NCBI GenBank assembly: GCA_964234715.1
Contig: OZ174278.1
Length of the DNA stretch: 64,000 nucleotides
Source: Podarcis melisellensis
Taxonomy: Eukaryota
Reading direction: 5' to 3' (one strand)
In this document: one piece after another, positions 21,229 through 45,232 of the stretch
Layout: every line of letters starts with the position of its first letter
Position numbering within the stretch: the first letter of the stretch is position 1
Notes under the pieces: model-generated
What the model saw: only the letters and a program-made list of their open reading frames with translations
Told to the model about the DNA's origin: nothing
Database searches by the model: none
Translations under genes and position numbers: made by a program

Positions 21229-21335
21229 CTCAGCTTCTGCTCAGGTAACCCTTGAAGACCCAGGCTATCTGGACGGTCCCGTCGCCTCCTATACAGACCT
21301 GAATGCGATAATTCTTTCAGCTGTAACGCAGTCAT
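21229..21335 (-). CDS. LIMS1: LIMS1 alternative first coding exon (middle): MTALQLKELSHSGLYRRRRDRPDSLGLQGLPEQKL(S)
   Basis: aaaATG start, 107 nt ending AG|gtgagt (phase 2; AG+C = Ser). Near-identical to the recalled mammalian MTALQLKELSHSGLYRRRRDRPDSL isoform. Too short for the ORF track. Confidence 0.93.
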
Positions 21336-22366
21336 TTTTGCTCTACCCACAACAGTTGCTCCCCTCCCAGAGCACACAAGAGCTCCTGTTGAACAGCACA
21401 ACTGCCAAGATGCTCGGAGGGAAGACGTCTCTCAGAGAGACTGCACACCTGCGCTGATCTGAATTGCAAGTCTCTCTCCTCACAGGCAGTTTGCTGCTCT
21501 GCTTCCTGTTTCAGATAGGTACACACCCTCCAGAACGGACGGCACTGTGTTTCCTTTAGCGAGTTAAGCCTCCTACCTAAGGGATGCTTCTGTGAGAAGC
21601 TAGGGCTTCAGCTGTTTCGGCACCCAGAAGCAAATGGAACCACTCACTGTGCACCAAAACTGCCACAAACAACAACAAGAAACCTCTTCCTGCCAGTTTC
21701 AAGAAGCTGAAAATCTTCAGCTAAGGATCAACTAAACGGTTACACCACCATGAAGTCTAACAAAAGCAAAACCTATTAGCACTTCATTGATGAGGGAAGG
21801 AAGGCCTGTGGTTTTCTACCTAAGAATTAATTCGGTGTTTAAGGTGGTTTTATATATATATATCTAAAAAATGAAAAGTAGTGAAAGACAGTAAGACAGG
21901 AAAAATACACGAAAGTTTCCCTTAACTTTGAAATACAATGCTGTAGGAGGACTTAAGTTCACGAGCAAAAATAGAAAAGTCCAAAATTGTGAGTATTTTT
22001 CTGTCCAGGTTGCAAACACCAAAGGCTACGTCATTCATCACTCATCACTTTTCCAATGTGCTTTGGGACAAGGTCCACTGGAAACTAGGGAAACAAGGAG
22101 GGTATATAAAAGGCTTTCCTGCAAAAGAGGAAGCTGGCAAACCGGAGATTTCTAAGTCATGCATGCCTCATTTAACCTTGTGATAAAAGCCTAGTGTGAT
22201 TTGCATTAGGCATAATAAAATGATTCGCATTATAACAAAAAAAACGATCACGTATCATGCCACCCACAGGAATTAAAATGTGAAGAAACAACAAAATGAA
22301 CACATATATGACACAAAGAAAATGTGTCTGTGATGGTTGATCTTTTTGTTTAGAAGTATCTTAGTT

Positions 22367-22552
22367 GAGAGCCGGTGTGATGTAGTGGGAAGGCTGTTGG
22401 ACGAGGACCTGGGAGACCAGAGTTCAAGACCCCACTCGGCTATGAAGCTCAATTGGGTGATCTTGGGCCAATAGCTCTCTCTCTTTCTCCATCTAACCAA
22501 CCTCACAGGTTGTTGTGAAGATAAAACTGTGGTAACCACCTTGAGCTCCAAG
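22367..22552 (+). mobile_element. tRNA-derived squamate SINE (second family)
   Basis: A/B-box-like head (gtgtgatgtagtgg...gagttcaagacccc) and cctcacaggttgttgtgaagataaaa body. Related remnants at ~5400-5640 (+), ~6540-6650 (-) and ~19060-19230 (-). Confidence 0.65.
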
Positions 22553-22558
22553 GAGATA

Positions 22559-22784
22559 CAGTGGTACCTCGGGTTACAGACGCTTCAGGTTACAGACTCC
22601 GCTAACCCAGAAATATTACCTCGGGTTAAGAACTTTGCTTCAGGATGAGAACACAAATTGTGCTCTGGTGGCGCGGCAGCAGTGGGAGGCCCCATTAGCT
22701 AAAGTGGTGCTTCAGGTTAAGAACAGCTTCAGGTTAAGAACGGACCTCTGGAACGAATTAAGTTCTTAACTAGAGGTACCACTG
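22559..22784 (+). mobile_element. Tc1/mariner-type MITE, family A
   Basis: ta|cagtggtacctc...gaggtaccactg|ta. Confidence 0.93.
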
Positions 22785-22999
22785 TAATTGTACTAAATGA
22801 TAATAAGACAACTGTATCCGTAATGCTCATATGCTTTGTGAAGAACATCCCATTAAGAATAGCATTAAGAACAGAACAGTAGTCCTGTGGAATCAAAGCA
22901 AAGTTCTGCCTAATTTGGGATCAGGTTTCCTTCCAGTGGCCAGCTAGCTGTTTCTAGGAAGCCCACGGCACAACAACAACTGCTCCCTCCACTTTTTCA

Positions 23000-23220
23000 C
23001 ATGAACACAAGAGTCTGCTGGAACGGGCCACTGGCCCATCTAGTCCAGCATTCTGTTCTCACAGTAGCCAACCAAGATGCCTAGGGGAAACGAACGAGCA
23101 AAATCAAGACACAAGAGCATTATGCCCTCTTGCAGTTTCCAGCAGTGGGTGCTGAGAAGTACTACTGCCTCCCACCACAGAGGCAGAGCGTAGCCACCAT
23201 AACTACTAGTAGCCACCACC
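23000..23220 (-). mobile_element. CR1-like 3' fragment
   Basis: ggcccatctagtccagcattctgttctcacagtagccaacca is typical of antisense CR1-type 3' ends. Confidence 0.5.
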
Positions 23221-23372
23221 AATAGCTACCCAACTGGTACGCAAGAGATACACAGTGGCGGAACATGGAGGTTCGATTCAGCAATCCAGGTTAAGGAGAA
23301 TTGATCCAGAATAATTCCAACTATGCCTATTTAGAAATCCTATTGAATTAAATAAGAGCAAATCCCAGGTAA

Positions 23373-23705
23373 GGGACGCAGGTGGCGCTGTGGGTTAAAC
23401 CACAGAGCCTAGGGCTTGCCGAAGGTCAGAGGTTCGAATCCCTGCGACAGGGTGAGCTCCCGTTGCTTGGTCCCTGCTCCTGCCAACCTAGCAGTTCGAA
23501 AGCACATCAAAGTGCAAGTAGATAAATAGGTACCGCTCAGGCGGGAAAGTAAACGGTGTTTCCTTGCACTGCTCTGGTTCGCCAGAAGCGGCTTAGTCAT
23601 GCTGGCCACATGTACGCCGGCTCCCTCAGCCAATAAAGTGAGATGAGCGCCGCAACCCGAGAGTCAGCCACGACTGGACCTAATGGTCAGGGGTCCCTTT
23701 ACCTT
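23373..23705 (+). mobile_element. Sauria SINE
   Basis: Head to ccctttacctt tail; TSD aatcccaggtaag. Confidence 0.94.
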
Positions 23706-25350
23706 AATCCCAGGTAAGTGGGGCTATGGTTGCAGCCTTATTCTTGGTAAATGCTTGGGTGATGGGAGTTTCCCTGCTCCCCTCCCCTATGTTCCATTGC
23801 ACAAGTAGAAATCTTTAAGCTCATGGAAGACTGAATGCAACCCCATGATATAGACATGCGTTTAAGAATGTTTTCATACAATTTGCAAAGAGATGAGGCA
23901 CGATCCTTTTGTTGGATCCTTTCATTACGGAGGTCAGGTTCACAGCTACCGGGAGTGCATCACTGCTGGTCTCTACTGTCTTTGTTAAACAGAAGGCCTT
24001 GTATGCTTACCCAAAGGTGGAACATACCAGCCTGCACTATAACCAGCAACCAAGACACTATGCATTGTTAAGGCCTCTTCAAACCACCCAATCCTTCCCC
24101 CTTTCTCAGTTTCCAGTAAGTAGGTTATGTCTTCTTGGACCCAGCCATGAAGAATCCGCTTCTGCTAAGAAGATTGCATGTGATGGGGCTGATTCGCTGA
24201 ACATGTGGAGAGCTGCTTGTCCTGCGTCCAATTGCTGTGTGCTGACAAACCCACGTATTGCCCAAGCATGGCTCCCACTGTGCTTGAGGAACCAATTTTC
24301 TACACAGTGTGTCCTTGCACACCTGCTTGGAAGGGGCAGGATTTTGTTCACACCCACTTTAAGAAGTAGAGACAAATTCCAAATCAGCCCTCATTTAGAA
24401 TGCACATCTGGAGAGTAAGAAATTTGGGGTGGGGGGCGAGAGGAAGATCCTGATATTTGCCTAAACATGCAACATTCCATTTTTCAAGTGGGAGAGCTTC
24501 AGCTAACTCTCCCAACATGCAGCAGGTGAAAAATAAGGAAGCAACAGCTTCCTAAAATCTTTCATTAGCGGTTTTTAAGAGGCAATTAGTACTCTCTCAC
24601 AGTTAACAATTCATGTGGCAGGGCTGTTGGGTTTTGTTATGTTCTTAAAGAAATCAGCAGGAGTAACTCTTACAAGAACATAATTGGTACACGTGTCAGC
24701 ATTGCCATTTCTGTCATAGGAAAAAAGTGAACGCACAGGAGATATTTATTAAAGAGAAAACTAGGGCAACATTTGAAAGTTGTGGGTGTAACGGGAGAAA
24801 CAGAGAGGTTTTGCTCAAATAGAGTTGTTTGCAGTTATCCTTCGATGTTTGCTATTTAAAACTAATAAGGCAAAATCCAAACAAGAGAAATGCTACCACA
24901 CACCCTTTCTGTTGCAAATGAGAGCGTATTTTGCTAGCTCCAAAGTACATCATGTGAACCTACAGCTTGTTTGCATGAATGGCTGCCAAATGGAGGTCAG
25001 CAGATGTTTGTGTAGCCATATCTGCCCCAATCTAGCACGGCTTCTTCCAAGGTCAAAATCCTGGTTGCAATGCACTTGTAGAAAAATTCACAAACAGATC
25101 CAGGCATGAACTTCTTTGAAGCCTAATCTTCTGATGACAATCAACATGGCACAATCTCATTTTGCCATAACACCATACATTTTGTACGGTTTCTGAAGCC
25201 GTTCCACCCATTCAGCCATCTTTTCAGTGGCTTTATTTTAACAACTAAATTTACGAAGTCTTAAATGGAACTGGGAAAGGATTTCCCAATCAGAGATAAG
25301 TGAAATGCTAGTAGCTTTTCTTGCAGGGGCGGGAAATCTATTCTGTGTAC

Positions 25351-25352
<2 letters not shown>

Positions 25353-25427
<75 letters not shown>
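25353..25427. repeat. Compound (TC)n(CA)n microsatellite
   Basis: Direct observation. Confidence 0.95.
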
Positions 25428-25430
<3 letters not shown>

Positions 25431-28080
25431 GACTTAGGGTGCAATCCTATACTCTTCTGATAGTACGCCTCAGTGAAATCAACTGGACTTACTCCTGAGT
25501 ATAGATGTATAGTATCGCGCCATCAGTAGCAGTAATATTGCTGAGGTACAAGCATCTTGGGTTCCCACCCCACAAATTCAATATGCAGTAATGGCCTCTC
25601 ACCCTTTTTCGAACACCCTCCCTTGTGGAGTGTTCCCTCAGCCTCCTCTCCTCTTCTTTCCACTCCCCATGGGGGTCCTCTGGGCAGTTGCTGCTTCCGC
25701 CCCTGATCTCTGAGCTGCACACCACCCTCGCCCCAAAGAGAGGTGCTCCCCAGAGGCAGAGTGGAGCTTATAGCCAGGGATGCTGCGACGAACAGCTGTG
25801 CAAGCCTTCAGGAATTAGAGACACAAGAGGGCATCAGAGGAGGGAGGGGAGGGAAGGAAAGAGGGACAGAGGCCAGTGTTGCACACCTGACCATCACTCA
25901 AGGTGCCCCAGGGTGCCACAGCACACTGGTGGAAAGCCACTGCCTTAGCCTGCTGCCTCTTCAGGCCCCAGCCAATTTTTTTTCTAGGCCCCTGCTCTTT
26001 AATTTCTTGTCTCATAGGTTCTTCTCTTCTGTAGCATCTCAACAACAGCCAGAAAACCATAAGACTGTCTCTCACCTGTGGGGCAGGTCAGCTAGTCACA
26101 GGCAGAAGTTACAACTGAAGGAAGATTTATTTATCATACAGCAACATTGGTTTGGAAAACTAAAACAATGAAATAACGTAGGCCAGAAATGCACACTTGA
26201 GGAGCCGGCAGGGGGAGAGGGAGCACAACGCTTCACAGAATATTTAGTTACTTCCAAGGTAAGTTTTGCAATATGTTCTTCAATTTAGAACCCTGGAATA
26301 AATAGGTTGCTCTTTACGTCTAAATTCTGCAGCTTTGTAATTCTCTGCAAAAGGTTTTCCTCTCCTTTCCTGTAACACCTAACTGTAGGTGAATAAGCCT
26401 CTTAACCCTTGGCTTGTTTATATAAACTAGGGACCTGAGGCTATTTAGTCAGGCTTGTTCTCCTGAGCCAACAGTCCTTGTAAACACAGACAGGAAATCT
26501 CATTATTTTTAAGCTCTCTTGCACATAGTCTCAGCTAGTTCTTTGCTTGTGCCCACCTCTGCATATCCAGAAGATGATGATTGTGCTATTGTTTAAATGG
26601 CCATTTATTCTGAAATGATAGAGAAATGATCCCTAGCCGCTTAATTACATAAGGGGGAGATTTGCTGACTTTCATTTCACTTCAGCCTCGGGATTCACCA
26701 CCTCTTAAGTGTGTAAACAAGACAGAGACTGAAGTGAGGGTGTTATTATAAAAATTACTGGTTGTGTAAATGAGCATTTCGTACAAACCATCTTTAGCAG
26801 ACTTGTAGTGGTTCAGCTACCTTATTTTGTTTATAGAAGTATATACCACCCTCTCGCAAAACATCAGGGCAACGCACACCAACAAATAAACATTTAAAAG
26901 CAATACGAAACAATCACTAAAACGACTGGCCACTTTGTCAAGCAGTTTCAAAATAAACATGATGAACAGATCAAGATTTCTTCGCCCTGGATGAAAATCC
27001 TCAACGCTTGCTCGATTTGTGAGAAATTCTGGGTATCAGGCAACACTTACATGGCAGTAATATTTAACTTGTCCTTTCCCTAGTCAGCTTTCAATGAACT
27101 TCAACCTAATGCCTGAAATGTATAGATAGACATGGATAACACATTATCTGCGTCTGCACATTTCAATCACTACACAGAAGTATAGCTAGAACTTTTCAGA
27201 GCCAGCCCAAATGTTTTTTACAGCCAGCTTGGTGTGTACAGGATTCGGCAGTAGGCAAGTTTAGCATCCAGGTGAGAAGGGCAATGTTCAACAGAAGGAA
27301 ATATAATCCAGAACAGACTGCTTTCCTTGGCTTCAGGGAAAGACTTGCTAGCTTAGCATCAACTACCAAATCAGATATGAAAGCAGCTGGGTTCTTGTTA
27401 TGAGACACTGGGGCACGACCAGAAACCCTGGCTTAGCCAGCATTCATAATGCACTAGCATCTTTGCTAAACATAATGCCCCTCCCTGTCACCATCTTAGA
27501 AATTTCTCCAGGTGACCCAAACACTTGTCCTTCTGCTTTTGGGGTGACTCATGAATGGGGACTAAGTAGAATCTCCACGGACAACACCCAGTTACTTTCT
27601 TGACATCCAAGCAGAAAGAGGCTCTTCAAGCTGGAATAAATAAAAAGGTGGCTTTTCAAACTACCATTCACTTTTCCTAAGCATTCAAATTGTATGTTTA
27701 AGTAGCTAGAATCTGTTGTGGAGCTAAGCAAAAGCTTCTGAGCATCCAGTGACAGAGCCATTCAACAAAAGTGAAGACTCGCTTTGGAGACCTTAAACAT
27801 AATTCTTGTAAACAAAAACAAAGTGAAAATGGTAGTCTGTGCATCATGTGCTCTCCCCTTTTGATACAAAATGTTCCTGTAGTTAAAACAGAATCTTGAT
27901 TCCCCTCCGCCTTTTAAGTCACTCTGTCTCAACTATGATACTACCTACTCCATCACCAAAAAGAGAACAAGTCATGTCCAAGGAATTTCCTTCCTGTACA
28001 CAAAATTATGGTTCAAATTGGGTCTGTTTCTGGCCAAACTAGAAGGCTTCCTAATAATACTTCCCTATCCTCAGAGTATA

Positions 28081-28427
28081 GGGACGTGAGTGGCGCTGTG
28101 GGTTGTGCTTACAACAGGGTTAAAAACCACACAGCCTAGGGGTTCGAATCCGCATGACGGGGTGAACTCCCATTGCTCGGTCCCTGCTCCTGCCCACCTA
28201 GCAGTTTGAAAGCACGTCAAAGTGCAAGTAGATAAACAGGTACTGCTCCGACGGGAAGGTAAATGGCATTTCCATGCACTGCTCTGGTTCCCCAGAAGCG
28301 GCTTAGTCATGCTGGCCACATGACCTGGAAGCTGTACGCCAGCTCCCTGGGCCAGTAAAGAAAGGTGAGCTCCGCAACCTCAGAGTCGTCCGCAACTGGA
28401 CCTAACGGTCAGGGGTACCTTTACCTT
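28081..28427 (+). mobile_element. Sauria SINE (altered head)
   Basis: TSD tatcctcagagta; small insertion and deletion in the head. Confidence 0.93.
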
Positions 28428-29571
28428 TATCCTCAGAGTAATTTCTGCATCTCTTAAGCTGCAGAAGGGAGTGACATGCAAAGAGTTGCTAGGCAGTTAA
28501 TGAATTTAAGAAGGACATGCCTTTCAGCTTGTTTACCATGCAGGGAAGAGGTGGGAGCAAATACTCATTTGTTGTAACTAAGATTTTACCTAGGTCTGTG
28601 CTGGAAAACAAGAGTTACTTCTCTCCCTCTGCAAGGCAAAACAAACAAACAAAACAAAGCACAAAACGTGTACCACTTGGCTGTGCCCAAGGAAATAGTG
28701 ATTCAGCAAACAAATTAGCCTAGCACACCTAGTCAGTGTAGGCTACTTCCCTATTTATAGAAAACACTGTATGATCACACGTCAGCATATAATTTTAATA
28801 AAAGGCACCGGCAGGATGCAGTGGTCAGTAAATATTTTTTTTTACCACAAAGCTAGGAAAGCAGGTAGGAGGGAAAAAAGAGAAGGAAACTCCCAGTGCT
28901 TGAATGAAGATTTATTTCAGGCCTGACACATTTTAGAACAATCCCTCTAAGGGGGGGGGGTACTATAAAAATACAAATAATACATATGTAAACAAGAAAT
29001 TGCAGTAGTGAAATAGGTTCTCATTGACTCATACTGGATGAATCTGAAACGGAATTGTCAAATTACTTAAAAGAATCCCTCCCCCCCCCGCCCACAAAAA
29101 AACCCAACAACTTAGAATACATTTTAAGAAAGCAAGGCAAGTACAAGCAGAAGCATGTGAGAAGTAGAATGGCAGCAGCACCCTCCTGCCAGTACCGTGT
29201 TTGAGATTGGAGGAGGAACAGGTTGGCAGTAGCATCCTGATGGGCTGCAGCCACCAACCCAGGGCTCCCCCAGCTTCACCCCACCACCACTGAAGTGCCA
29301 CTGCCACTCTGTCCTCCTCATGTGCCACACCTGGCAAGGATTACATCTCCAAGTGGCCTACTGGAAAGACCAGTTGACACAGACCTTAGTCCACCTTCTC
29401 TCCTCTTGTTACCCTGGGTAAAGAACTCAGGAGCCCAGAGGCCTCTAATAACTTCCATCTATTGTCCGATCTCCCATTTGACCCAAATTAAATCACCATT
29501 GGGAAGGGCTCAGATATGTCCAATGTGGTGGGTATGGGAAGGAAGAAATGTGTCCCGTTGAAATTATTTTA

Positions 29572-29797
29572 CAGTGGTACCTGGGGTTACAGACACTTCA
29601 GGTTACAGAGTCTGCTAACCCAGAAATAGTACCTCGGGTTAAGAACTTTGCTTCAGGATGAGAACAGAAATTGCACGGCGGCAGTGCAGTGGCAGCTAGA
29701 GGCCCCATTAGCTAAAGTGGTGCTTCAGGTTAAGAACAATTTCAGGTTAAGAATGGACCTCCAGAACGAATTAAGTTCTTAACCCGAGGTACCACTG
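29572..29797 (+). mobile_element. Tc1/mariner-type MITE, family A
   Basis: TA-flanked CAGTGGTACC TIRs. Confidence 0.93.
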
Positions 29798-29941
29798 TAC
29801 TACCATTAGCCAAATCTCTAGAGATGACAGCATTGGTGTGTGGCAAAACAAACAAAAACAAAACAATACAAAACAAAACAAAAAAAACATCCCAGGGTAA
29901 AAACAGTAACTACAGAATACCCTGTCATAGTTTTCATTGTA

Positions 29942-30177
29942 CAGTCGTACTTCAGAAGTCAAACGGAATCCGTTCCGGAAGTCCATTCGACTTCCAAAGC
30001 ATTCAACCTCCAAATCGCAGCTTCCGATTGGCTGCAGGCAATTGGAAGCTGCAGAAAGCCCGTCAGATGTTCGGCTTCCAAAAAAAGTTTGAAAACTGGA
30101 AGAGTCACTTCCGGTTTTCAATCGTTTGGGAGCCAAGACGTCTGAGTTCCAGGGTGTTGGACAACCAAGGTACAACT
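29942..30177 (+). mobile_element. Tc1/mariner-type MITE, family B
   Basis: ta|cagtcgtac start; family-B interior. Confidence 0.85.
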
Positions 30178-30471
30178 TATGCTCCAGCGTAGCCTAATCT
30201 GAAAGACCCAACCTTTTGTCCTTATCTGGCTCTCATATTCAGGACAGTTAGAGAATACACACTAGAGATATATTTCCACCCTTGCACGTCAACTGTTGTA
30301 TTAGGACACTATCCTGGCTGTAAACAGGGACTTTCCCTCCAGGTAACGTAGGAATTTATTTTTAAAAAGATTTATAGACCGCTTAATAATAAAACTCTCC
30401 AAGCAGCATAGACAATATCATTAATAATTTTTAAAAAAGCAAAAATACACAGAATGGTCCAAACACAAGTA

Positions 30472-30713
30472 CAGTGGTACCTTGGGTTACATACGCTTCA
30501 GGTTACATACGCTTCAGGTTACATACTCCGCTAACCCAGAAACAGTGCTTCAGGTTAAGAACTTTGCTTCAGGATGAGAACAGAAATCGTGCTCTGGCGG
30601 CGCGGCAGCAGCAGGAGGCCCCATTAGCTAAAGTGGTGCTTCAGGTTAAGAACAGTTTCAGGTTAAGAACGGACCTCCGGAACGAATTAAGTACTTAACC
30701 TGAGCTACCACTG
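30472..30713 (+). mobile_element. Tc1/mariner-type MITE, family A
   Basis: TA-flanked TIRs; family-A interior. Confidence 0.93.
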
Positions 30714-31200
30714 TATAGATAAGGTAATTATTAATAAAACACAACAACAAAATCAGCAAAAGGCTTCAAAACAAAGATTAACTAAATTTGGTTCTCATAT
30801 TGGAGATTTCTCATTTCAAGCTGCTGTATTTCTTCCTTACGGTTGTAGACTAACAGGCTACCTGCATGTTATACTCTAACATATGTTATAATGCCCTGGC
30901 ATAGTGTCTATGGTTGTTTTTTTTTAACCCAGTCTCTTTTGGAAAGAGAAATATAGAGCAGGGCGTGGTGAGAGAGGGGAATTTAGAGCAGAGATGTCCG
31001 TAGGGTGTGGTGAAACTGAACCATTTCCCCACTCCAAATCACCCTCTCATATGACTTCCTCTCCCTTGCGTGGTTCAAAAACCCATGTTTGCCAAAAGAC
31101 TACTGGAAATTCTACTTCCCTTATAGCAGTGCACATAAATTCTCCCATGTGACTTCTACGCTAGAACTATAACTGAATAGGATTTTACCACTGCATAAAG

Positions 31201-31521
31201 CGTGGGTAAGCAAACTAAGGCCCAGGGGCCGAATCCGGCCCAATCGCCTTCTAAATCTGGCCTGCAGATGGTCCGGGAATCAGCCTGTTTTTACATGAGT
31301 AGAATGTGTCCTTTTATTTAAAATGCATCTCTGGGTTATTTGTGGGGCCTGCCTGGTGTTTGTACATGAGTAGAATGTGTGCTTTTATTTAAAACGCATC
31401 TCTGGGTTTTTTGTGGGGCATAGGAATTTGTTCATACCCCACCCCATAATATAGCCCGCCCCCCCAAAAGGTCTGAGGGACAGTGGACTGGCCCCCTACT
31501 GAAAAACTTTGCTGACCCCTG
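31201..31521 (+). mobile_element. hAT non-autonomous element (same family as 17919) with internal ~60-bp duplication
   Basis: 8-bp TSD gcataaag; tacatgagtagaatgtgt...tgtgggg present twice. Confidence 0.9.
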
Positions 31522-32271
31522 GCATAAAGGTTGGACACAGATGCGGACACCAGCCCACCAAGGTTTGTTTTACTTGAAATAAAAGCTCATACTGTTACCT
31601 ATCAGGCAATCAGTTTTGCAACATCTCCCTCTGCTGATAGACTGCCTAATGTGCTGTCTTTCTATGTCAACGTTGTATATACTGTATCCTCTGGTTATTC
31701 AACACATTCGTCCAATTTGCTTCCTTTCTTATTCTCACCAGCCTGTATAAAACCTTGCATGTTGGTCATCTTTGAATAAAGTTTTATTTCATGTGTACAT
31801 TTAGGAACTGGCCAGCAGAGACCTTCCCTATTTCTACTGCTCTTTTTATAAAGATAATGTTGTTTAGTATTAGACAACCTTAATTTTAACTCTGACAGGT
31901 TGAGGGAAGGAGGAATACGGACTAACTAAGAGATTCACTCGCTCACAGAACTACTATTTCTGCATACCAGGGAACAAGGGAAGATGTAAGCCATTTCCCT
32001 CCTCAAATTAAAATTTGCTGACTTTCTTTCTAGCTTAGATCTGCATGCGAGCCCTGCCAGGGACAGATACATTTATAAATTAATAGCTATCTATAAGATA
32101 TCTTACACACTTTAAAGTCCCAGGAAGGGTGGCAGCAATATAAGCAGACCATTTTTATTGCACTTAGTGCAATTTTATATGCAGAACACACCTCCTTGCT
32201 GTATTTTTTAAAATGAAAATACAGTTTATAAATATTTGCATAAACAAAATAAAAACAAGAAAAAGAGTTTA

Positions 32272-33507
32272 CAGTGGTGCCTCGCAAGACGAAATTAATT
32301 CGTTCCGCAAGTCTCTTCGTCTTGCGGTTTTTTCGTCTTGCGATGCACGGTTTCCCATAGGAATGCATTGAAAATCAATTAATGCGTTCCTAGGGAAACC
32401 GCCTTCAGACCAGGTCCGGGGACAGTCTGTCCCCGGACCTCTTCTGAAGGCTGGGGGGCGCGGGCTTCGCAGCAGCGCTACGAAGCCCGGCGGCTGGGGC
32501 AGGTGTTCCCGCCCCCCCCTGCTTCGGAGCAGCGTTCCGAAGCGGGGTGGCTGGGGCAGGTGTTCCCGCCCCCCGCCCGGCTTCGCAGCAGCGCTACGAA
32601 GCCCAGCGGCTGGGGCAGGTGTCCGGGATCTCTTTTGAAGCAAGCGGCTGCGGAGAGAAGCGATCTCCCCGCAGCCGCTTGCTTCAAAAGAGGTCCGGGA
32701 TCTCTTTTGAAGCAAGCGGCTGCGGAGAGACGCGATCTCCCCGCAGCCGCTTGCTTCAAAAGAGGTCCGGGATCTCTTTTGAAGCAAGCGGCTGCGAAGA
32801 GACGCGATCTCCCGCAGCCGCTTGCTTCAAAAGAGGTCCGGGATCTCTTTTGAAGCAAGCGGCTGCGGAGAGAAGCGATCTCCCCGCAGCCGCTTGCTTC
32901 AAAAGAGGTCCGGGATCTCTTTTGAAGCAAGCGGCTGCGAAGAGACGCGATCTCCCGCAGCCGCTTGCTTCAAAAGAGGTCCGGGATCTCTTTTGAAGCA
33001 AGCGGCTGCGGAGAGAAGCGATCTCCCCGCAGCCGCTTGCTTCAAAAGAGGTCCGGGATCTCTTTTGAAGCAAGCGGCTGCGGAGAGAAGCGATCTCCCC
33101 GCAGCCGCTTGCTTCAAAAGAGGTCCGGGATCTCTTTTGAAGCAAGCGGCTGCGGAGAGACGCGATCTCCCCGCAGCCGCTTGCTTCAAAAGAGGTCCGG
33201 GATCTCTTTTGAAGCAAGCGGCTGCGAAGAGACGCGATCTCCCCGCAGCCGCTTGCTTCAAAAGAGGTCCGGGGGCAGCGGGAAGAGCTGCCCCCGGACC
33301 TCTTTTGAAGCAAGGGGCGGTGGGGAGAAGCGATCTCCCCGCCGCCTCTTGCTTCAAAAGAGAAGACCCGCTGTCCCCGGGGCAAGCTTCGTTTTGCGAA
33401 GCAAGCCCATAGGGAAATTCGTCTTGCGAGACAACTCGAAAACGAAAAAACCTTTCGTTTTGCGAGTTTTTCGTCTCGCGAGGCGTTCGTCTTGCGGGGT
33501 ACCACTG
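32272..33507. mobile_element. Young CpG-rich Tc1/mariner-type non-autonomous element carrying a hairpin minisatellite
   Basis: ta|cagtggtgcctcgcaagacgaa ... ttcgtcttgcggggtaccactg|ta (22-bp imperfect TIR, TA TSD). Confidence 0.92.
32620..33361. repeat. Tandem array of nine 71-72-bp palindromic units plus one diverged unit
   Basis: Unit: ggtccgggatc-tcttttgaagcaagcggctgcg-[loop]-cgcagccgcttgcttcaaaaga. Starts at 32620, 32692, 32764, 32835, 32907, 32978, 33050, 33122 and 33194; diverged hairpin at 33301-33361. Confidence 0.97.
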
Positions 33508-34851
33508 TATATACAATTATAAAAAAACAAGTTTAACATATACAAGCAAGAACAATACAGTAGAGATTAAACAAATTAATCTCCCATCATCCCTGACCAT
33601 TGGGCATGCTGGCTGGGGCTGCTGGGGGGAGTTGCAGTCCTGCCACATTTTCTAGGTGGCCACAGGTTCTCATCCCTGATCCAAAAGGCTCCTGCACTAA
33701 CAAAGGGAGACTTTTCGCACTGTTATAATGATTTACGTTTGCAGTACCGAGGGGCAGAGAGGCTGCTTTGTTGGTCTACGTTTACTCATCTCCCCAAGAG
33801 TAAATTTGAGAGAAAGACTGGTCTATTTTGTTTAATGTAAACAACATTCTCTATCCCTTTGGGTGAAATGGGGAGCGATTCTTCCTAGGACAGATGAGGG
33901 GCCTGGGAAGGTTATAGCAGGAAAGTCAAAAGGACACTACTCAGCTGTAAATCCAAAGCAGAGGGCAGCAGTGGAGGAGCTCTTGGAAACCCAAAATTGT
34001 CTCTTTGGTAGGGCTCTGTTCCTTACTGCTCAATTTAGGACAAGACCTAAGAGAAGTTTTATAAAATATTCACAAGCAAGGACAACACCCTTCTTGCAAT
34101 AGATGAAAAGTGTAGATGTGTGGTTTGTTTGAAAAAGTCATTGTAAGCAACAACTGCCTAGCAAAAAAGGATTAAAACAGTAACACAGAGCCAAGGGTGG
34201 AAGAAAGTTATTTTCAACAGCACGGAAAAGCCATTTTTTTTTATTCTCATAAAAATAAGAATTTATGCCCTTTTGCAATTGCTCCAGGAAAGGACTTTCT
34301 TCCACTTCACAAGCTGCTGCCTGTGAGAATTTATCTTAGCGGTAAGTCCCTACTGTCCTGAATCTGCTGTGTCCTCAAAGTCACAAGGAAATTACACTAA
34401 ACTTACACTAAAAGTTCCACCGAAGTTACAGTGACTTAAACACACGTATCTGTGGGCACAAGATTATTTCAAGCAGTACGAGAGAAAAGCCCAAACTGGC
34501 TTCCTAGAAGAAGCAACCCACGCTGCTGAAATAATCATGCATATATGGCATGACTCAGAAGCTTAGAGTGGACAGTGACTCAGATGCCCAGGGTGGGTAG
34601 CACATCCCCAATGCCTGCAGTAGTTTTGAATATGGTTTTTTTTAAAAAAATAATTAAAATAACTTCGGAAGTACATGGGGGAGAAAAGCATGTGTCCATA
34701 TATCAGCGCATGCAGCCCTTAAAAAAAAAGAACTACACCGAAAAGCAGTGCATAGATACTTCTCCAAATCCCGCTCTGTGAAAAACAGCCAGTTTTAGTT
34801 TTCTTTATTATTGAAACTGAATAAACTTGTGCGGGACTAGAAAGGGCTGTA

Positions 34852-35050
34852 CAGTGGTACCTCAGGTTACAGACTCTGCTAACCCAGAAATAGTACCTCA
34901 GGTTAAGAACTTTACCTCAGGATGAGAACAGAAATTGCGCGGAGGGAGCAGGAGGCCCCATTAGCTAAAGTGGTACCTCAGGTTAAGAACAGTTTCAGGT
35001 TAAGAACGGACCTCCAGAACGAATTAAGTTCTTAACATGAGGTACCACTT
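34852..35050 (+). mobile_element. Tc1/mariner-type MITE, family A (shorter)
   Basis: ta|cagtggtacctcaggtta...gaggtaccact. Confidence 0.92.
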
Positions 35051-36057
35051 TACACAGAACTTAATGCTACCCTAACAGCATCTTCTGTTCCCCCAACTCC
35101 CAATTGCATTTGTAGTTATCAACACACCACTGGCTGAATGGAAGCCCATGGCCAGCATGGTGTGGAAGGGAATGTAAATACCATTGCTCTTCAGAAGTGA
35201 AGGCCTATGGGCAGCCCAAGTAATCCCAACCCCCCAAGTTATGCTGCAAACTGAATAATATTCCTAAGCGACACAAGATCCAACAAAAGCAGTTCAACAG
35301 CTCCCTTTCCAGTCCCCAAAGGGCTTAACGGCAGCAAGTCTCTCAAATGGGACATTATTCAGCTAGTCTCACTTCTCTCTAGAACTGTGTGCCTGTGTAG
35401 CCGCATTAATGGTTATTTCTGAAATTACTAAACGACACCCCAGCCATGCAAACCAATTTAGCTTACAAGTACAGAGTTTGCAAGCAAACTGATGGCACCC
35501 CTGAATGAAAAGAAATAATTAAAATGCGACAATACTCACGCTGTCGCTCTGCCAGCAGCACAATATCTGTTGAATGGACCAATGCCACATATAGTTTCGT
35601 GCCGAATATTCTGTGTTCCACAGCTTCTCTGTGGTCATTACTGGCAGTGGTGATAAAAGGCAGCATGACTTGACAAACCACTTCCTTTTTTTTTTTTTTA
35701 AACGTGGATATGCATTGAAAGCTTCTTTACTTAAAAGAAAGATGCAAAATATGTCTATTGTAGTATTGGAAACGTTTGAAACTTTAGTTTCAAACCCCGT
35801 GTCCAGAGCAAAAGAAAGTCTCCTCCTCCACGAAAATGGGCCTTTTGTTTCTCTCTACACTCAAAAAAAAACCTCCCCCACCAACCAAAATTATATTTTA
35901 AAACACACCAAATGGAAATTGCAGAATGCACAAAAATGTCTTAATTTCCTACAAAAGCGACACAAAATTTTTGGTGCCAAAGCTATCCAATCATTAGAAG
36001 CGCTGGGAAAGGCAGCAATATTTTTTCTATCACAGGGTTTTATGGGCTTTTCCTTTC

Positions 36058-36067
36058 AGTAATAATA

Positions 36068-36118
<51 letters not shown>

Positions 36119-36507
36119 TTATTTATATCCCACCCATCTGACTGGATTTCCTCAGCCACTCTGGGTGGCTCCCAACAGAATATTAAAAACACAATAAAAC
36201 ATCAACCATTAAAAACATTAAACAGGGCTGCCTTCAGATGTCTGCTAAAAGTCAGATATTTGTTTATTTCCTTGACATCTGATGGAAGGGAGTTTCACAG
36301 GGTGGGCGCCACTACTGAGAAGGCCCTTTGCCTGGTTCCCTGTAACCTCACGTCTTGCAGGGAGGGAACCGCCAGAAGGCCCTCGGAGCTGGACGTCAGT
36401 GTCTGGGCTGAACGATGGGGGTGGAAACGCTCCTTCGGGTATACTGGGCCAAGGCCGTTTAGGGCTTTAAAGGTCAGCACCAACACTGTGAATTGTGCTT
36501 GGAAACG
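36058..36507 (-). mobile_element. L2 LINE 3' fragment with long (AAT)n tail
   Basis: Translation AQFTVLVLTFKALNGLGPVY.KER...SSSEGLLAVP...RAFSVVAPTL is the L2-clade ORF2 C-terminus. Confidence 0.88.
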
Positions 36508-39110
36508 TTTGCCTCCTTCTTCATATTCTTGCTTGGAGATCCACATCTTGTACATAAGAACTTCATGTACAGCAGCCACTCTAAGTTCCTTGAAGATGTT
36601 GTTACGTAAAATAAACAGTGACAAAAGGACCCCCTGGACCTGAAGTGGTAGTGGCTTCTGTAATATGGCAGAAGGAACCAAAGCCCCAAAGGGGGGGGGA
36701 GCCAAGGTCAGATCCACTGAAGCCACATGTGACCCAGAAGCCCCAAACGTAGGTCTGGGTGGATGTTCTCATATCTTAAGTCCCCTACATCTTTTGCAAT
36801 GAAGGGGGCACATTTCCTTTGACTATGCATTGCAGCTGAGTGACACGGCATTTTTTTTTTAGTCCACTCCTCAGAATATCCCATCAAGACTAATTTTTGA
36901 GATTGACCAAGTGGAGGAAACCAATATCCACAAGGCTATTTTCTATCAGATATTTCATTATGAGAAGATCCCAAAGACAACTTTCTACAGGTGAGAGCTG
37001 GTGGTTATACATCAAATATATGACCTATAGTTTGATGGTGATTTTGAAGGGATCCCTTGTAAGAATTATGACAATTCAGAAGGATCCATCAGTTTCTTCC
37101 CCTCTTATCTCCCTCCCCAGTGACTCTGTTTTCCTTCCTCTAGTCTCCCAGATAACCCCTCTCTCCCTCTCTTTCTCCACTCTTGGTTATTCTGCTTTCT
37201 GCTCAGGTGCAGATATGAGTCTTGAAAACCACAGAGCTGAAAGAGGATATGGAAAAGAGCAACAGTCTTCCCACTTCCTCTTCCAGCTCTATGTTATTTT
37301 CAAGGAGAGGGGGAGAGAGGGTAACAACAGTCTTGAAAAAGGCAGCAGTGGCTGGAGAGCATTCGAGGCATCTGGGAAAGTCCCTGCACTACTGCAAGCA
37401 TAGGACCATGTTGGCAACACCAAAACACAACAATTATAGTGTCACTCCTCCGTAAGGTCCTTCATAGATCATGCTTCTGCTGGATTTCACAGCAGAAATG
37501 TCATTTTTAAAATTTAAGATTATGAGGTGCTTTAAAGGGTTAGGGGGTTTTTTTTAGGTGGAGGAAGCAGGGAATGTGTTTATTTGTTAAATTAGTTAAA
37601 AAGCTTGCTTTTTGAATTGCATTGCTCTTCTACCCTCAGAATACTGTAACAAAGTTAACTGAATATAAATTAAATAGGGACTTGAACAGTCCCTCAATGA
37701 AAACACTCAATACTTTTAAAATCTTTGGGCATGATGCAGCTTTTAAAAACATATCATATAATCCTATTAGTTTTCATGAGATAATTAATTATATGCTTTT
37801 CACTTTTGATATCAGCAAGACTAAAAGCAGCCTTACTTTGGTCGCATTCCCCACATAATTCATAAGATGCAATTTTACAAACATGCTACCTATTAAAAGC
37901 CTATTCCTTTAAAATACAAAGTTCTGTTGTGCCTAAACTTCATAAGCCAGCCCCATTCTCATTGTTTCAACAGAAGCAGGCAGAAAAGACAGGATGTTGC
38001 TTCACGATGACACTAAAAAAAATTGTGGTTTCAAGGAAAATGAAGGCAAACTTACACTGCAAGGCAACTAGGGCACCAGTGCCGTTAAATTTTATTTATT
38101 ATTAATTTTTACCCACCCTGTCTGGAGCAAGTTCTGCAAAGCTTCATAGGTGGCAGCCTTCAAGCCATTTGCTTTGGAGTCACCCTTAAAGCCAGTGGAA
38201 TAATCAGTAAGAAGTTCAAGGATCACAGTGCTGATTATGTAGACTAACAAAGTCAAGCTCTCCGAGACTGGTTTTGCCATATGAGACAGGAAAGGGCAAA
38301 TATTTAGCCTGGTAAGACAGTACAAAGTCCGGCTGCCTCAACTCTGTCTCAGAATATCTCTTTGCCAAAAATGCACGAATGAAGCAGCTTGCACAGGGCA
38401 TATTGGCATTGCTATGTTGGCTTAAGGCAGGTGTGGGAAACCTTTAGCCCTGCAGATGTTGCTGAACTACAATTCCCATAATCCACGGCCTGTCATGATG
38501 CCTGTGGTGGTTGGAAAAGAACTCCCCAAGTTTTCTCAACGGAAAGGCATTAACCTTGGACACAGATGCATTAAACACCTGTGCTTGCTTTTGTCTAAGC
38601 TACTTGCTCACTCAAAAGATGCCAGAGGTCCAGCCTTGGAAATTGCCTGCCCCCCACCACATGAGTTCCAGCATCAGACCAGAACACAGCATAGCCTGAA
38701 GCAGAACCCAAAGGAGAACTCTAGCAACTTGTGGTTTTCACCTCAGGAGTTCCCTCTGCTGAAGAGACAAGCCACCAATCAACTGAAAAAGCAGCTTGTT
38801 TCTTCTGCAGCAAGGCCTTATGCAGCAAACACGGGCTCTCACTCGCGTCTCTTTTCCTTATAACAGGAGTCTATCAAAACATCGTTCTGAGAACTGGAAA
38901 GAGCCGTATTTCGCAACACCATCCCTCAATTATATGCTTGGCTACGCTAGCATATTTCTTCTCGGTAAAGACATCGTCCTCTTACTCAACCTATGCAGGA
39001 AATTTTCTTTGCCTTAAGGACATGAATTCCTGTCCTTATCACCCAGAGAAGGGTGAGGCCACATAGTTAGCCACCACTTGAATAAAAATGGTTTGCTTTA
39101 TTTTAACGAC

Positions 39111-39471
39111 GGGACACAGATGGCGCTGTGGGTTAAAGCCTCAGCGCCTAGGACTTGCTGATCGAAAGGTCGGCGGTTCGAATCCCTGCTGCGGGGTGCG
39201 CTCCCGCTGCTCGGTCCCAGCGCCTGCCAACCTAGCAGTTCGAAAGCACCTCCGGGTGCAAGTAGATAAATAGGGACCGCTTACCAGCGGGAAGGTAAAC
39301 GGCGTTTCCGTGTGCAGCTCTGGCTCGCCAGAGCAGCGATGTCACACTGGCCATGTGACCCAGAAGTGTCTCCGGACAGCGCTGGCCCCTGGCCTCTTAA
39401 GTGAGATGGGCGCACAACCCCAGAGTCTGTCAAGACTGGCCCGTACGGGCAGGGGTACCTTTACCTTTACC
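39111..39471 (+). mobile_element. Sauria SINE, divergent subfamily
   Basis: Same head and (ACCTTT)n tail with a distinct 3' body; ttattttaac duplicated at the flanks. Confidence 0.92.
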
Positions 39472-40242
39472 TTATTTTAACACTCTTTCGGAGCGCTGTA
39501 CTGCTGAAATACTTTTAAGCCATCCAAAATGTCACCTGCAAGAGCTGTGCTGAGGATGCAAACTGGTGTGGTGGTAGAGATTTAGACACACAAAGTCATG
39601 CGTCTCATTTGGGTGCCATGATGTGGCTGGCAGGGGAATGCTTGACAAAGCTCCGCTACTACCACTACAATATACATTTCAGCATGAGGAATCTCACATC
39701 AACTGCATACTTTTGATTGTGTGGCCAGCCCAGTCTGTGCTATCTTCTGCACATTTGCTGAAGAGCTCTGAGTATGTAGGTTATAAGGATTGCCCTACTA
39801 TAGAACTTCCTCTTTGTTATGAAATATAGCATCTTTTACAGCCCATAAACACATGCAGATGATGAGCAGATAGCGCTCAGAGGTCAACAGGAAAAAGATT
39901 TGTACAGAATCTTGGGAGAAAGCCACTTGTCTGGCAAGATAGGCAAGGGCCAATTCTTACTTTACTTTTCGTAAAAAATAAAATTCAGATGTGAAAGGCA
40001 CTCCTCCCTTTTAAAAGCTTCCCTTGGAAGCAATAGCCTGATCCTTTCTCAGAAGTTACTCCTGAGTTTCTAAAAGAGATACGTGGCCAATTCTAACACA
40101 GATTTCCCCTCCCAATATATTTGAATATTTTGTACTACTGAGGTACATACGCCCAAGAATGAAAGGGAAAGTGAGAATCACCCGGAGGTATGGTAAGACA
40201 TGGCTGCAACAAAGCTCTCTTTCCACAGGTACAGGTAAAATA

Positions 40243-40821
40243 CCGTATTTTTCACCCTATAGGACACACTCCCCCCCCCCCAAAAATGAAGGGGAAATGT
40301 GTGTGCGTCCTATGGGGCGAATGCAGGCTTTCGCTGAAGTCTGGAGAGCGAGACCCGACCCCTCTCGCTCTCCAGGCTTCAGGGAGCTATCCGCAAGCCT
40401 TAGGAGCCCGTGGGAGTTCCCGCCAGGCTCCCTAGGCCTGTGGATAGCAGCCTGCATCCCGAAGCCTGGGGCACACTGAACTCAGTGCGCCCCAGGCTTC
40501 GCGCAGCTCTCTGCAAGCCGTGGGAGCCCTGCGCAAAGATCTCCCACGGCTTGCAGAGAGCTGCCTGCATCCCGAAGCCTGGGGCACACTGAGCTCAGCG
40601 CGCCCCAGGCTTTGGGCAGATATCCGCAAGCCTGGGGAGACCGGCGCGACTTCCCACCAGGCTCCCTAGGCTTGCGGATAGCAGCCTGTTCTGGGGGCTG
40701 GGGTCGGGGGAAGCTCGGGCTTCCCCCGCCCCAGTCCAGTGCCTGGGGGAAAAATAATAATTTCACCCCCTTTATTTCCCCCCCAAAAAACTAGGTGCGC
40801 CCTATGGGGTGAAAAATATGG
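40243..40821. mobile_element. TA-flanked Tc1/mariner-superfamily MITE (CCGTA termini) with internal GC-rich tandem hairpins
   Basis: ta|ccgtatttttcaccctatagg ... cctatggggtgaaaaatatgg|ta; about 2.5 copies of a ~115-bp unit. Confidence 0.85.
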
Positions 40822-42395
40822 TAATCTGTGATGCCAGATAGATCCACTTTTACTGTAGCTTCCACAATCCTGCCACTGGGTGCCATCACAGCAGAAGCTA
40901 TGAAAAGGAATGCAACGGAAACAGACCTGACTGAGAATGTCACAGGTCTCTGATGGCATCTTAAGGTCTGGTGAATCAACAAGCATAATATGTGTTCCTC
41001 AGATCATGGCCTAGTCAATTCCATGCCACACAAATGCTATCTGTTTATCATATATCAACAACAGCTCTCTGAGGCAGATTAAAGCCTTGGTATTTCGTAA
41101 TGAACCAGCTGCATTCAGAAACACGGCTGAAGTCTACAAGAACTTAGAAATCTTATCTACTTCCTGTGTATATTTCTAAATTCCCTTTGAAACTGTGTTA
41201 CGAGGCACAAAGCTGTAGATCGCTTATTTGCACTTTTGCAAATGTAGAGGATAAAACAAAAGACTCATACATTCAAAAAGCATTATGTTCAGGGACATAC
41301 TTCCTGTTATCACCTTTTAGTTCTAGTCTAAAAGGAAAATACTGTAAACGCTTTCAAAAGATGCAAATGTAAATTAAAGCTGACTAACCTTACAAAATAC
41401 AAAGAGCAATGAATCTAGACATCAAACTGTATGGAATGAATTAAATGCTAATTGATTAAGACACTACCTGCATTGACTGCAACTATATGCATTTGTTGAA
41501 TAGCCAAGTTTTGCATGTGGCTCAGAATTAGCATCTCTTCTATAGGCCTGGGAATTTTAAGATTATAACCTTGCTAAATGGGAAGCAAGCATAATGAATG
41601 TCATGCTAGTTTGTAATATCTGTCAATAACATGTGTGTCGTAAGCGCTAAATGTATATTATAACAGATATACATTAATAACTTGTATATTCCGTAATGAT
41701 GAGTGGTATCTGCAACCATCTTCCTGTTCTGCCTTAACGATTCGAAAGGTTGCAGAATCTATCTGTTACAAAGAGACGTTAGCCAGGCCAAAGACACTGT
41801 CTTACCTGTTGTGTGAAGAATGCGTATCATATTGGCCTCATTGCTAAAGTCTGGTCAGGCTCAATTTCCCCTTTTTAATTGCCATCCCTGGAAAGTGGCA
41901 ATTTCCAGGCAGTTTATACATTCCATTCTTTTGTCGAATCCTATTTTGCTCAGGTCAGAAATAAGATATCGTTCATGACTTATTCAGAGCATGTTCAATC
42001 CATAACCAGCTGCCCAGTGGTGCCAAATTCTGATGCTGGGCCTGAGGTTACAGTTGGCTTTCTTACATGCGAGTATCTGTGTAGAAAATTGTTATGTGTG
42101 AGTAGCAATGAGCTTCTCTGAGGTCAAACGGGGCAGCAGATCTCTACATCAAAACAAGGAAAACCTATTACTTCTTGCTAGCACTTCTCTCTCCAGCAGA
42201 TGGAACCAGAGGTCTATCATATCTGTTGCCTTTATACTATTTCAGAAATTTAGTCTGCAATCTTAAACACACTTGCTAGAGTGTAAATCTCACTGAATGG
42301 GGCTTGCTTCTGAATTTACATGCTTAAGATCATGCTATCTAATAATCTGATTCTCAAATCTGGGTCCCTTTTTTATTTTCGCCTTGCAGTTCTTC

Positions 42396-42763
42396 AAGGT
42401 AAAGGTAAAGGTAAAGGTAAAGGGACCCTTGACCATTAGGTCCAGTTGTGACCGACTCTGGGGTTGCGGCGCTCATCTCGCTTTATTGGCCGAGGGAGGT
42501 GGCGTACAGCTTCCGGGTCATGTGGCCAGCATGACTAAGCCGCTTCTGGCGAACCAGAGCAGCGCACAGAAACGTTGTTTACCTTCCCACTGGAGTGGTA
42601 CCTATTTATCTACTTGCACTTTGACGTGCTTTCGAACTGCTAGGTTGACAGGAGCTGGGACTGAGCAACGGGAGCTCACCCCGTCATGGGGATTCGAACC
42701 GCCGACCTTCCAATCGGCAAGCCCTAGGCTCTGTGGTTTAATCCACAGTGCCACCCGCGTCCC
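42396..42763 (-). mobile_element. Sauria SINE
   Basis: (AAAGGT)4 tail on the plus strand, full body and head. Confidence 0.94.
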
Positions 42764-43634
42764 TTCTTTAAAGTAGTGTGGGCAAATTACGCAAGAGTTT
42801 CAACATGGGGAGAAAGGGGATTTCAGAAGATGTAGCTTGTCATATTTTTTTCTAGCTGATCGACCTATTTTAGGAACAATAATACGTGCACGCCTTAAGG
42901 CAAAGCACGTTTGCTCAGCAGACACCAACTCAACTGGAAGTCTAGACACCCATATAACAAAGCAAAATTAAATTACGTCACCATCATCTTTCCAGAAGCA
43001 ATTTTTTAGGAAAACCATTGAGTCACTGACAGAATTATAGCAGAAAGGAGAAGTGTTGCCAGTCTAGGATGACTATATATCCCACCACAGACAGCATCAC
43101 TTCTTTTCAACATTCAATAGGAAGTTTAAAATGCACTGAATTTTCTAGCAAGTTTTATTTAAGCTACAAAAACTGGGAGCTTTATATAGTGTGTGGTTTA
43201 TATAGTTTGATGTTAAACTCCTTCTCCCCAGCTCTTGTGCAGTTTCTCTTTCTAAATAAAAAGGAAGCCTCTCATTAGAACAACACTTTGCAGAATCCCT
43301 GCTTTTCCTAATGACAGAAATGAGGGCAATTATTTACCCAGTTAAAGGGGAATAAAGGGACCCAATACAACAAGTTAACCCCTTCCTCCTCCACCACAGA
43401 CATGACCAAAACCACAGATCCCAACCTCCCTGCTAATGGATGTGTGCACTGGCACAAATGGGAGATTCCCTTCCAGGGCCAACAGCAGCTACAGGAGGGT
43501 GATTTTTGTCAGGGCAACAGCAGGGCAGGGGTTAACTTCCCTGGAATACTTTGTCCCCCACAGATGGGTTTGCAGCACTGGCAAAGTGCTCCCTCTCTCC
43601 TAGTTCTAGTTCTTCCCCATCCAAGCTTATATAA

Positions 43635-43750
43635 TAACAACAGCAGCAGCAGCAACAATAATTTATTATCTGTACCTTGCCTATCCGGCTGGGTTGCCCC
43701 AGCCACTCTGGGCAGCTTCCAGCATTTATAAAAACATTAAACCTTAAAAA
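43635..43750 (-). mobile_element. Short L2 3' end
   Basis: ggctgggttgccccagccactctgggcagcttcca matches the L2 ends at ~3060 and ~36140. Confidence 0.7.
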
Positions 43751-44624
43751 GCTTCACCTTATGGAAGACAATAATAATCCTCTTTGCCCCTTTTCCTTAC
43801 TGTCATGCCAAGAGCAGATTAGTTGGTTCACTAGAGGCTTTCCTTCCTTATGCCCAAAAGCTTCCTGGCTGGACTCCCAGAGCCCAGAGACACAGCCTCC
43901 TAGTCCAACGCTCTTCCCACTAGCTTGGCAGCCTACACTCTCCCAATTTCTTTATCTCCCGACTACTTCTCCTGAAGCTGCTTCACTGCAGCTCTGGCCA
44001 ATATCTGGGCCATCAAAGCCTCTCACAGCCTCTGTCAGGGTAGGGGAGAGACCCTGCAGCTGAGGTATAGCATGGGATGCTCTCCGTTCGTTCTCACAAA
44101 CTTAGAACAAGAAAGGAGATTCTGAGTATTTATTTTATATTCTTCCCTTCCTCTCAGAGTGGTTCGCACCCTGGCAAATTGTTAAACCAAAACTACAAAA
44201 CAATAACACACCCCCACACCTCACTCACAGACACGATTGAAAAGCTGTAGGATATGAATCAGCCCAGGGCCTGGTGGAAAAGGAAGGTTTTCGCCTGGTG
44301 CCTAATATATATATAATGAAGGCACCAGGCAAAGCTCTCTGGGGAAAGCATTCCACAAACGGGGAGCCACTAAACATCAGGGAGAACTTTCTGGCAGTTA
44401 GTGTGGTTTGACATGCGTGACATGCGCGTGACATCATGCAGCTGTCAAATGCATGGGATGTCACGCATGCAGCACATGTGTGTCATTGGGAAGAGGCTGA
44501 GCATGGGGCCCAGCATGTCTGGCGGCTCCTCGTCTCTTGCACTCAGGAGGAGCCGGCCGCTGAAGCCACACTGCACTCAGTTGGATGCCCAGCCTCCTTC
44601 TAAACATCAGCAAGGACTTTCTGG

Positions 44625-44790
44625 TGGCAAGAGCTGTTCAGCAGTGGAATGGCCTCCCTTGGAAGATGGTTTCTAAGCAGAGGCTGGATGGTCATCTGTC
44701 ATGGATGCTTTAGGAGAGATTCCTGCATTACAGGAAGTTGGACTAGATGGCCCTCAGGGTCCCTTTCAACTTTACAATTCTGTGATATTA
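44625..44790 (+). mobile_element. CR1 3' fragment
   Basis: cagtggaatggcctccct...aagcagaggctggatggtcatctgtc...ggactagatggcc...tcaactttacaattctgtgat. Confidence 0.65.
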
Positions 44791-45232
44791 GGACTGTCCC
44801 ATTTCCTACTCTTGAGGGATATTGCAGTTAAAAGGATTTGCTAAAGCCTAGAACTCAAGAGTATGTGCTCTCTGAAGGTCCAGTCTCAGGATCTGGCAGC
44901 CTCTCAGCTGTCCACCACTGCCATCAGGTAAGGTATATGGAAGACATGAAGGTGTCAAATGATGTACGGGGGGGGGGGGGGCACCAAGTGTCGTTTTGCT
45001 GAGGACCCCCTCTGCCCAGGAGTCAGCATTTTTTTCTGTGCAAAGTTATACCTGTAGCTCTGACAAAGTTACCCTGATTGCGTCCTGTGCATAACAATAT
45101 TCTGTTATCGAGTCAGTCTTCACTCTGGTTACCTGCCTAGTATTTACAGAAGAAGTGGCTTCATACAATATACCACCAAAAAAAAAAGAAACAAGGAACA
45201 CTTTCCTTGCCTTGTGCATCTATAAAGCCAGA

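Follow-up and report, generated by a model that had tools for sequence, protein, structure and literature searches.

A probable Tigger-like non-autonomous transposon with a tandem array of palindromes in a LIMS1 intron of Podarcis melisellensis

Tigger elements generate TA duplications and bear TIRs of ~20 bp; among reptiles they have been reported from 20 species, in some of which intact copies persist (PMC9219625). Tigger-like MITEs include the MITE_109 cluster of Rhodnius prolixus, which begins with TA + CAGTGGTACCTCGGTTTTCGAA (PMC4678618), while in Anolis the TcMar-N9, N11, and N16 families begin with CAGTGYYCCCTCRCT, N11 being described as Tigger3-like at its ends (PMC3014272). MITEs that carry tandem repeats have likewise been described, namely DTC84 of Donax trunculus and the oyster elements pearl and CvA, and palindromes have been proposed as hotspots at which array length changes (PMC3879986). 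In humans, the palindromes of Made1 MITEs gave rise to the miRNA genes of the mir-548 family (PMC1784062).

The locus described here lies in a 64,000-nt stretch of one strand of the Podarcis melisellensis genome (assembly GCA_964234715.1, contig OZ174278.1), referred to below as the window, which contains 0 N bases. At positions 32272-33507 it holds an element of 1,236 bp with a GC content of 59.7%. Our preferred reading, to which we assign a probability of about 0.82, is that of a young non-autonomous Tigger-like transposon, a cut-and-paste DNA element of the Tigger/pogo branch within the Tc1/mariner group, with a passenger palindromic minisatellite that was expanded by slippage and block duplication. 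This kind of element, a Tigger-like non-autonomous transposon with tandem repeats, is already known, and the present one is an ordinary member of it.

Ends, relatives, and host intron

The element is TA-flanked and TIR-bounded, as an earlier reading made from the letters of the window (the sequence-only reading) had stated. The two TIRs agree at 20 of 22 positions; their pattern is unique in the window, absent from 100 shuffles, and has 0 occurrences expected by chance, and in local alignment the inverted similarity between the two ends ceases beyond 22 bp. Compared with MITE_109, the left end is identical at 14 of 15 positions over the TA and the first 13 bases, and both TIRs close with CGAA. 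Both a TA duplication and a ~20-bp TIR with a Tigger-like terminus, as expected of the Tigger/pogo group, are thus present, and the probable assignment to Tigger is one made by the ends only. A TA match of 2 bp in AT-rich DNA is weak evidence when taken alone; the insertion lies at a TA, and the intron around it is AT-rich.

The element has no coding capacity. The longest ORF through its array (249 aa) is spurious, and it found no relative in a word search. Both strands of the element are free of polyadenylation signals and of strong donor motifs, and a scan for bacterial-type promoters and terminators, signals not relevant to an animal genome, returned nothing above chance. Exact scans with the stem word of the array and with a degenerate TIR gave 0 matches in metagenome contigs, and the degenerate TIR gave 0 in viral contigs. 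The term MITE, which had been applied to the element, strictly denotes elements of < ~800 bp in high copy number; a length of 1,236 bp (~560 bp if both tandem arrays are cut to one unit) makes the term loose, and "non-autonomous Tigger-like element" is more exact.

With 114 CpG dinucleotides, the element has a CpG observed/expected ratio of 1.04, compared to 0.30 in 10 kb of flanking sequence and 0.39 in the whole window. It looks young by this measure, congruent with the little CpG decay reported earlier, although the high CpG content could alternatively mean that the element was kept unmethylated rather than that it is young. The claim that it adds a CpG-dense patch to the intron also holds, as there are only two such patches in the window, the element itself and, near 59 kb, the island of the distal LIMS1 promoter.

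The ends are not solitary. TA followed by CAGTGGTACCTC, with at most 2 mismatches, marks ~20 ends in the window versus 0.31 expected, and five of these ends pair into complete elements of 199-242 bp, all of them TA/TA-flanked. The five small relatives are older, with CpG observed/expected ratios of 0.39-0.70, and 85-92% alike. In their abundant family, with members of 199-246 bp, the 16-bp terminal repeat GGTTACAGACGCTTCA is present one to three times depending on the copy; at one end of both the large element and the ~230-bp relatives, the terminal unit is repeated at a 16-bp period. The left end of the element aligns gap-free over 72 columns with the right ends of the small elements and of a third family (61418, 53875). 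What they share is an end scaffold composed of the terminus, a motif X, a conserved TTAATTCGTTCYG segment, and the reverse complement of X. In the element, an 11-bp motif, TTCGTYTYGCG, has 8 copies in the window, all in the element's ends, versus 0.04 expected. These subterminal copies are presumed to be transposase-binding sites.

Motif X differs among the three families, the third having the same scaffold with yet another motif. Six of the 11 pairs between X, next to the terminus, and its inverted copy ~25 bp further in (alignment columns 12-22 with 45-55) have changed on both sides, with the intervening segment conserved, and 86.9% of the X/inverted-X cells are paired, versus 24-46% in controls slid by 1-3 columns. 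Since only three families are compared, this co-variation amounts to about three independent events. It suggests either co-evolution of the binding sites with different transposases or a role for a terminal hairpin. With the shared end scaffold and a motif of its own, the element stands for a separate family, larger and younger in appearance, within a superfamily abundant in this genome; of this exact family, the window has one copy only.

LIMS1 lies on the minus strand. Its ORF at 6553-6170 (minus) matches PINCH/LIMS1 LIM1 structures (PDB 1g47, E 1.8e-29), with LIMS2 as a weaker match; this protein match covers a single exon only. A proximal ATG is found at 6343, with a ttacag acceptor before it. 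Exons further upstream were sought in the minus-strand frames with short motifs that we take to be those of the human isoform N-termini, and the reading frame was carried across the intron by base counting. The distal exon so located, 59521-59490 (minus), has its ATG at 59521, an exact 7-residue match, an AG/GTAAGC donor after 59490, and an in-frame phase. This exon (MLGVAAGVTN...) resides within a CpG island at 59-60 kb (GC 0.67, observed/expected 0.81). The placement of the distal and Met1 exons on either side puts the element inside the ~53.1-kb intron of the distal-promoter transcript, where the sequence-only reading had located it, and ~23-26 kb upstream of the proximal LIMS1 starts. A second alternative LIMS1 first exon appears at ~9330-9150 (minus), ends in ...RRHSDVKVYKEICDFYAR, and is ~2.8 kb upstream of the Met1 exon.

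Interior of the element

The features of the element, its relatives, and the host intron are collected in Table 1.

Table 1. Coordinates in the window of the element's parts, its relatives, and the host intron
Feature	Position	Strand	Basis
TA target-site duplication, left copy	32270..32271	.	Read from sequence
Left TIR, 22 bp; final 11 bases are copy 1 of the subterminal motif	32272..32293	+	Exact pattern match and alignment with CAGTGGTACCTC superfamily ends
Left subterminal region: 11-bp motif once, then two inverted copies (32316, 32332)	32283..32342	+	Motif count and co-variation
Imperfect 52-nt palindrome	32349..32400	.	Sequence; paired in minimum-energy fold
Hairpin module H1: 13-bp GC-rich stem within a 9-bp outer stem	32401..32451	.	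Fold -43.9 kcal/mol, z -6.4
Second tandem array, 57 bp x 2.7; unit is a 7-bp-stem hairpin plus a G/C-rich tail	32463..32622	.	Tandem Repeats Finder
Main array, nine units of 71/72 bp, variants A-B-C-A-C-A-A-B-C'	32621..33266	.	Tandem Repeats Finder, unit splitting, folding
Hairpin module H1': 13-bp stem, 7-nt loop	33267..33299	.	Unit splitting and local alignment
Diverged tenth unit, outside the homogeneous array	33300..33362	.	Stem-word arms with 3 + 2 mismatches; fold -58.1 kcal/mol
Right subterminal region: five direct 11-bp motif copies, last three 16 bp apart	33388..33496	+	Motif count
Right TIR, 22 bp, 2 mismatches to left TIR	33486..33507	-	Pattern match
TA target-site duplication, right copy	33508..33509	.	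Read from sequence
Small CAGTGGTACCTC MITEs, 199-246 bp	22557-22786, 29570-29799, 30470-30715, 34850-35052, 52118-52363		End search
Further CAGTGGTACCTC MITE matches	7629-7714; single ends 15352, 53875, 61418		End search
LIMS1 intron, ~53.1 kb, from distal first exon to the exon encoding Met1-Glu52 of PINCH-1 (6347-6188)	6348..59489	-	ORF match and exon motifs

The dominant interior feature is the main array, reported by Tandem Repeats Finder over 32621-33273 with a period of 72, 9.1 copies, 97% matches, and a score of 1243. Splitting it yields units of 72/72/71/72/71/72/72/72/72 bp, in exactly the variant order that had been read from the letters. A 22-nt stem word occurs in 18 mismatch-free copies, 9 per strand, where 0 are expected by chance. 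Each stem has a perfect Watson-Crick core of 23-24 bp and extends to ~32 pairs, longer than the perfect stem of at least 22 bp claimed at the outset.

Variation among the units is restricted to positions 33 and 39 and to a C-run at 47-50, all within the 17 nt that separate the perfect arms, in keeping with the earlier remark that only the loop varies; by our own count, which takes the sites as random over 72 positions, the chance of all three variable sites falling there is ~0.01. The variants form a single-step series: A to B is an A/C change at unit position 39, B to C' is a G/A change at position 33, and in the step from C' to C one C has been lost, which formerly paired with position 33. 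An A-type loop is found in the tenth unit, and variant A is therefore probably ancestral. Units 1-2 are identical to units 7-8, and units 3-4 to units 5-6. Such identical two-unit blocks imply that block duplication contributed to growth of the array, and the multi-unit duplications suggested earlier are in this sense at least part of its history.

Folded as RNA, single units reach -57 to -63 kcal/mol on either strand, with z ~ -12 relative to shuffles. The unit fold, in which ~32 pairs enclose a 5-nt loop, has an energy of -62.6 kcal/mol for the plus strand and -61.9 kcal/mol for the minus strand, so the prediction that the hairpins fold on both strands is matched by the computed energies. 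A second register, shifted by half a unit and spanning the unit junctions, folds at -58.6 kcal/mol with a 3-nt loop; with DNA parameters, the two registers come to -38.9 and -36.8 kcal/mol. Because each unit folds in two registers, the array is better described as 18 alternating inverted arms with two short spacers than as nine separate hairpins. In the minimum-energy fold of the whole element, units pair with distant units, creating one long duplex.

The rest of the interior is also palindromic. Module H1 is homologous to 33258-33312 by local alignment, and the 9-nt spacer between the array units looks like a collapsed copy of H1'. The 57-bp array scores 250 with 83% matches in Tandem Repeats Finder. 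Two further hairpins that had been quoted from the element were located, one being H1 and the other recurring in each 57-bp unit. Between 57-bp units 1 and 2 (32463-32576), the 7-bp stem is kept but shifted, with an outer G-C lost and an inner G-C gained, a small case of hairpin-preserving change within the element. Outside the element, ~850 bp away, a 71-bp unit is repeated 1.9 times with 93% matches at window positions 31286-31419; this repeat is AT-rich and unrelated to the element in sequence.

Growth of the array and competing readings

In the mechanism that we propose, a Tigger-type transposase acting in trans would move the element, recognizing its terminus (CAGTGGTRCCYC, 12-14 bp) and, probably, the 11-bp motif as well. 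The interior is a chain of GC-rich palindromic modules, one of which was amplified to nine tandem 72-bp copies; the amplified module looks like the tenth unit together with a collapsed neighboring hairpin. As the units are palindromic in two registers, single strands exposed at replication or repair would fold back, and on general grounds such fold-back may promote slippage, unequal exchange, and block duplication. The exact two-unit blocks, each occurring twice, fit this mode of growth. Template switching within hairpins, the classical model of quasi-palindrome correction, would keep the stems perfect, leaving the loops to drift from A through B and C' to C. For LIMS1, the by-products would be an added CpG-rich patch and, in pre-mRNA from the distal promoter, a stretch of strong double-strandedness. 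Most likely, the array is itself a passenger by-product, not a device working for the host.

Placement of the element in another superfamily (hAT, PIF/Harbinger, or piggyBac), or its dismissal as an immobile local palindromic duplication, is hardly credible, even though lizard hAT elements likewise start with CAGTGG (PMC3014272) and a single copy of the exact family was seen. Many TA/TA-flanked elements of the window can be aligned with its ends, and its terminus matches a published Tigger-like one. The flanks have only TA in common: the outer 8 bases on the left and right (AGAGTTTA vs. TATATACA) do not match, which excludes hAT, and neither the 3-bp (TWA) duplication of PIF/Harbinger nor the TTAA of piggyBac is present. 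Foldback elements have very long, subrepeat-built TIRs that form most of the element. Here, the end similarity stops at 22 bp, for which reason a Foldback identity was rejected, and the array consists of palindromes repeated directly in tandem within the interior. Assembly is difficult for palindromic tandem repeats, and one might ask whether the unit number, or the array itself, was created by expansion or collapse during assembly. Such an artefact is highly improbable given the ordered, non-periodic mix of four variants, the presence of both 71- and 72-bp units, the sharp boundaries with the unique modules that adjoin the array left and right, and a window without N.

It is also conceivable, if unlikely, that the array is a working source of dsRNA in the LIMS1 pre-mRNA, edited by ADAR or cut by Dicer or Drosha into small RNAs with LIMS1 or further family copies as their regulatory targets. 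The location inside the distal-promoter intron, unit folds of about -62 kcal/mol on both strands with z ~ -12, the ability of the whole array to form one long duplex, and the Made1 precedent all lean this way. Against it stand the Rfam comparisons, in which every miRNA family remained below its gathering score (best 43.1 bits vs. 85) and the matches were scattered across many unrelated hairpin families; at a permissive threshold, the element yielded only sub-threshold, generic hairpin matches. The element is also too young for selection to have acted. A primary miRNA is recognized by its imperfect stem of ~35 bp, an apical loop of at least ~10 nt, and single-stranded basal flanks. The hairpins of the array have instead perfect stems of up to ~32 bp and loops of 5 and 3 nt, and they lack single-stranded flanks because neighboring arms pair together; with no curated family match in addition, they depart from a canonical miRNA precursor on both counts. 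The tiny loops, perfect duplexes, and paired flanks of the folding models accordingly weaken the idea of Microprocessor cleavage, while the stems and the long inter-unit duplex could possibly serve as substrates of ADAR or Dicer if transcribed.

Significance and comparison with described systems

Under the preferred reading of a Tigger-like transposon with a passenger minisatellite, the element offers a clear case, with well-defined boundaries, of a non-autonomous transposon that carries repeats within a vertebrate gene, and it illustrates how a palindromic module within mobile DNA can grow into a minisatellite. Its related families further exemplify an end architecture that is kept as the repeated 11-bp motif changes. 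The importance of such arrays would be greater if they turned out to vary in length and serve as markers, to be fragile, or to release edited or diced RNA from the introns of their hosts. A more far-reaching proposal, which we consider quite unlikely, is that Tigger-like elements of the lizard lineage are vehicles that spread self-perfecting palindromic minisatellites through genes, to the benefit of the element, the host, or both. If this were true, the folded interior would bring the ends together, so that an element of 1.2 kb would retain the mobility of one of 230 bp, and for the host the intronic dsRNA would feed ADAR or Dicer, seeding small-RNA loci and CpG islands.

Among described systems, the Tigger-like MITEs (MITE_109 and Anolis TcMar-N9/N11/N16) resemble the element in their TA, short TIR, non-coding nature, and abundance of small relatives in the same genome. 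It differs in being five times longer than its small relatives in the window, in its 11-bp subterminal motif, and in an interior of GC-rich palindromes with two tandem arrays. Membership in the pearl/DTC84 type was rejected: the element does have a central array, but neither end of that array bears a microsatellite and the duplication is TA, so that the resemblance is one of design only. In DTC84, pearl, and CvA, too, TIR-bearing flanks serve as a cassette that encloses a central core-repeat array, with ordered repeat variants. DTC84 itself has an AA duplication and no more than five core repeats, each ~160 bp long, with a microsatellite bordering the array on one side (PMC3879986), whereas the element combines a TA duplication and Tigger-like ends with nine units, each a near-perfect two-register palindrome. 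Made1 provides the third comparison, being likewise a MITE of the Tc1/mariner group whose palindrome gives a hairpin when transcribed within host transcripts (PMC1784062). In Made1, the hairpin is built from the element's own TIRs and its miRNA processing is documented, whereas in the Podarcis element it is the internal tandem units that are predicted to fold, and to do so with tiny loops.
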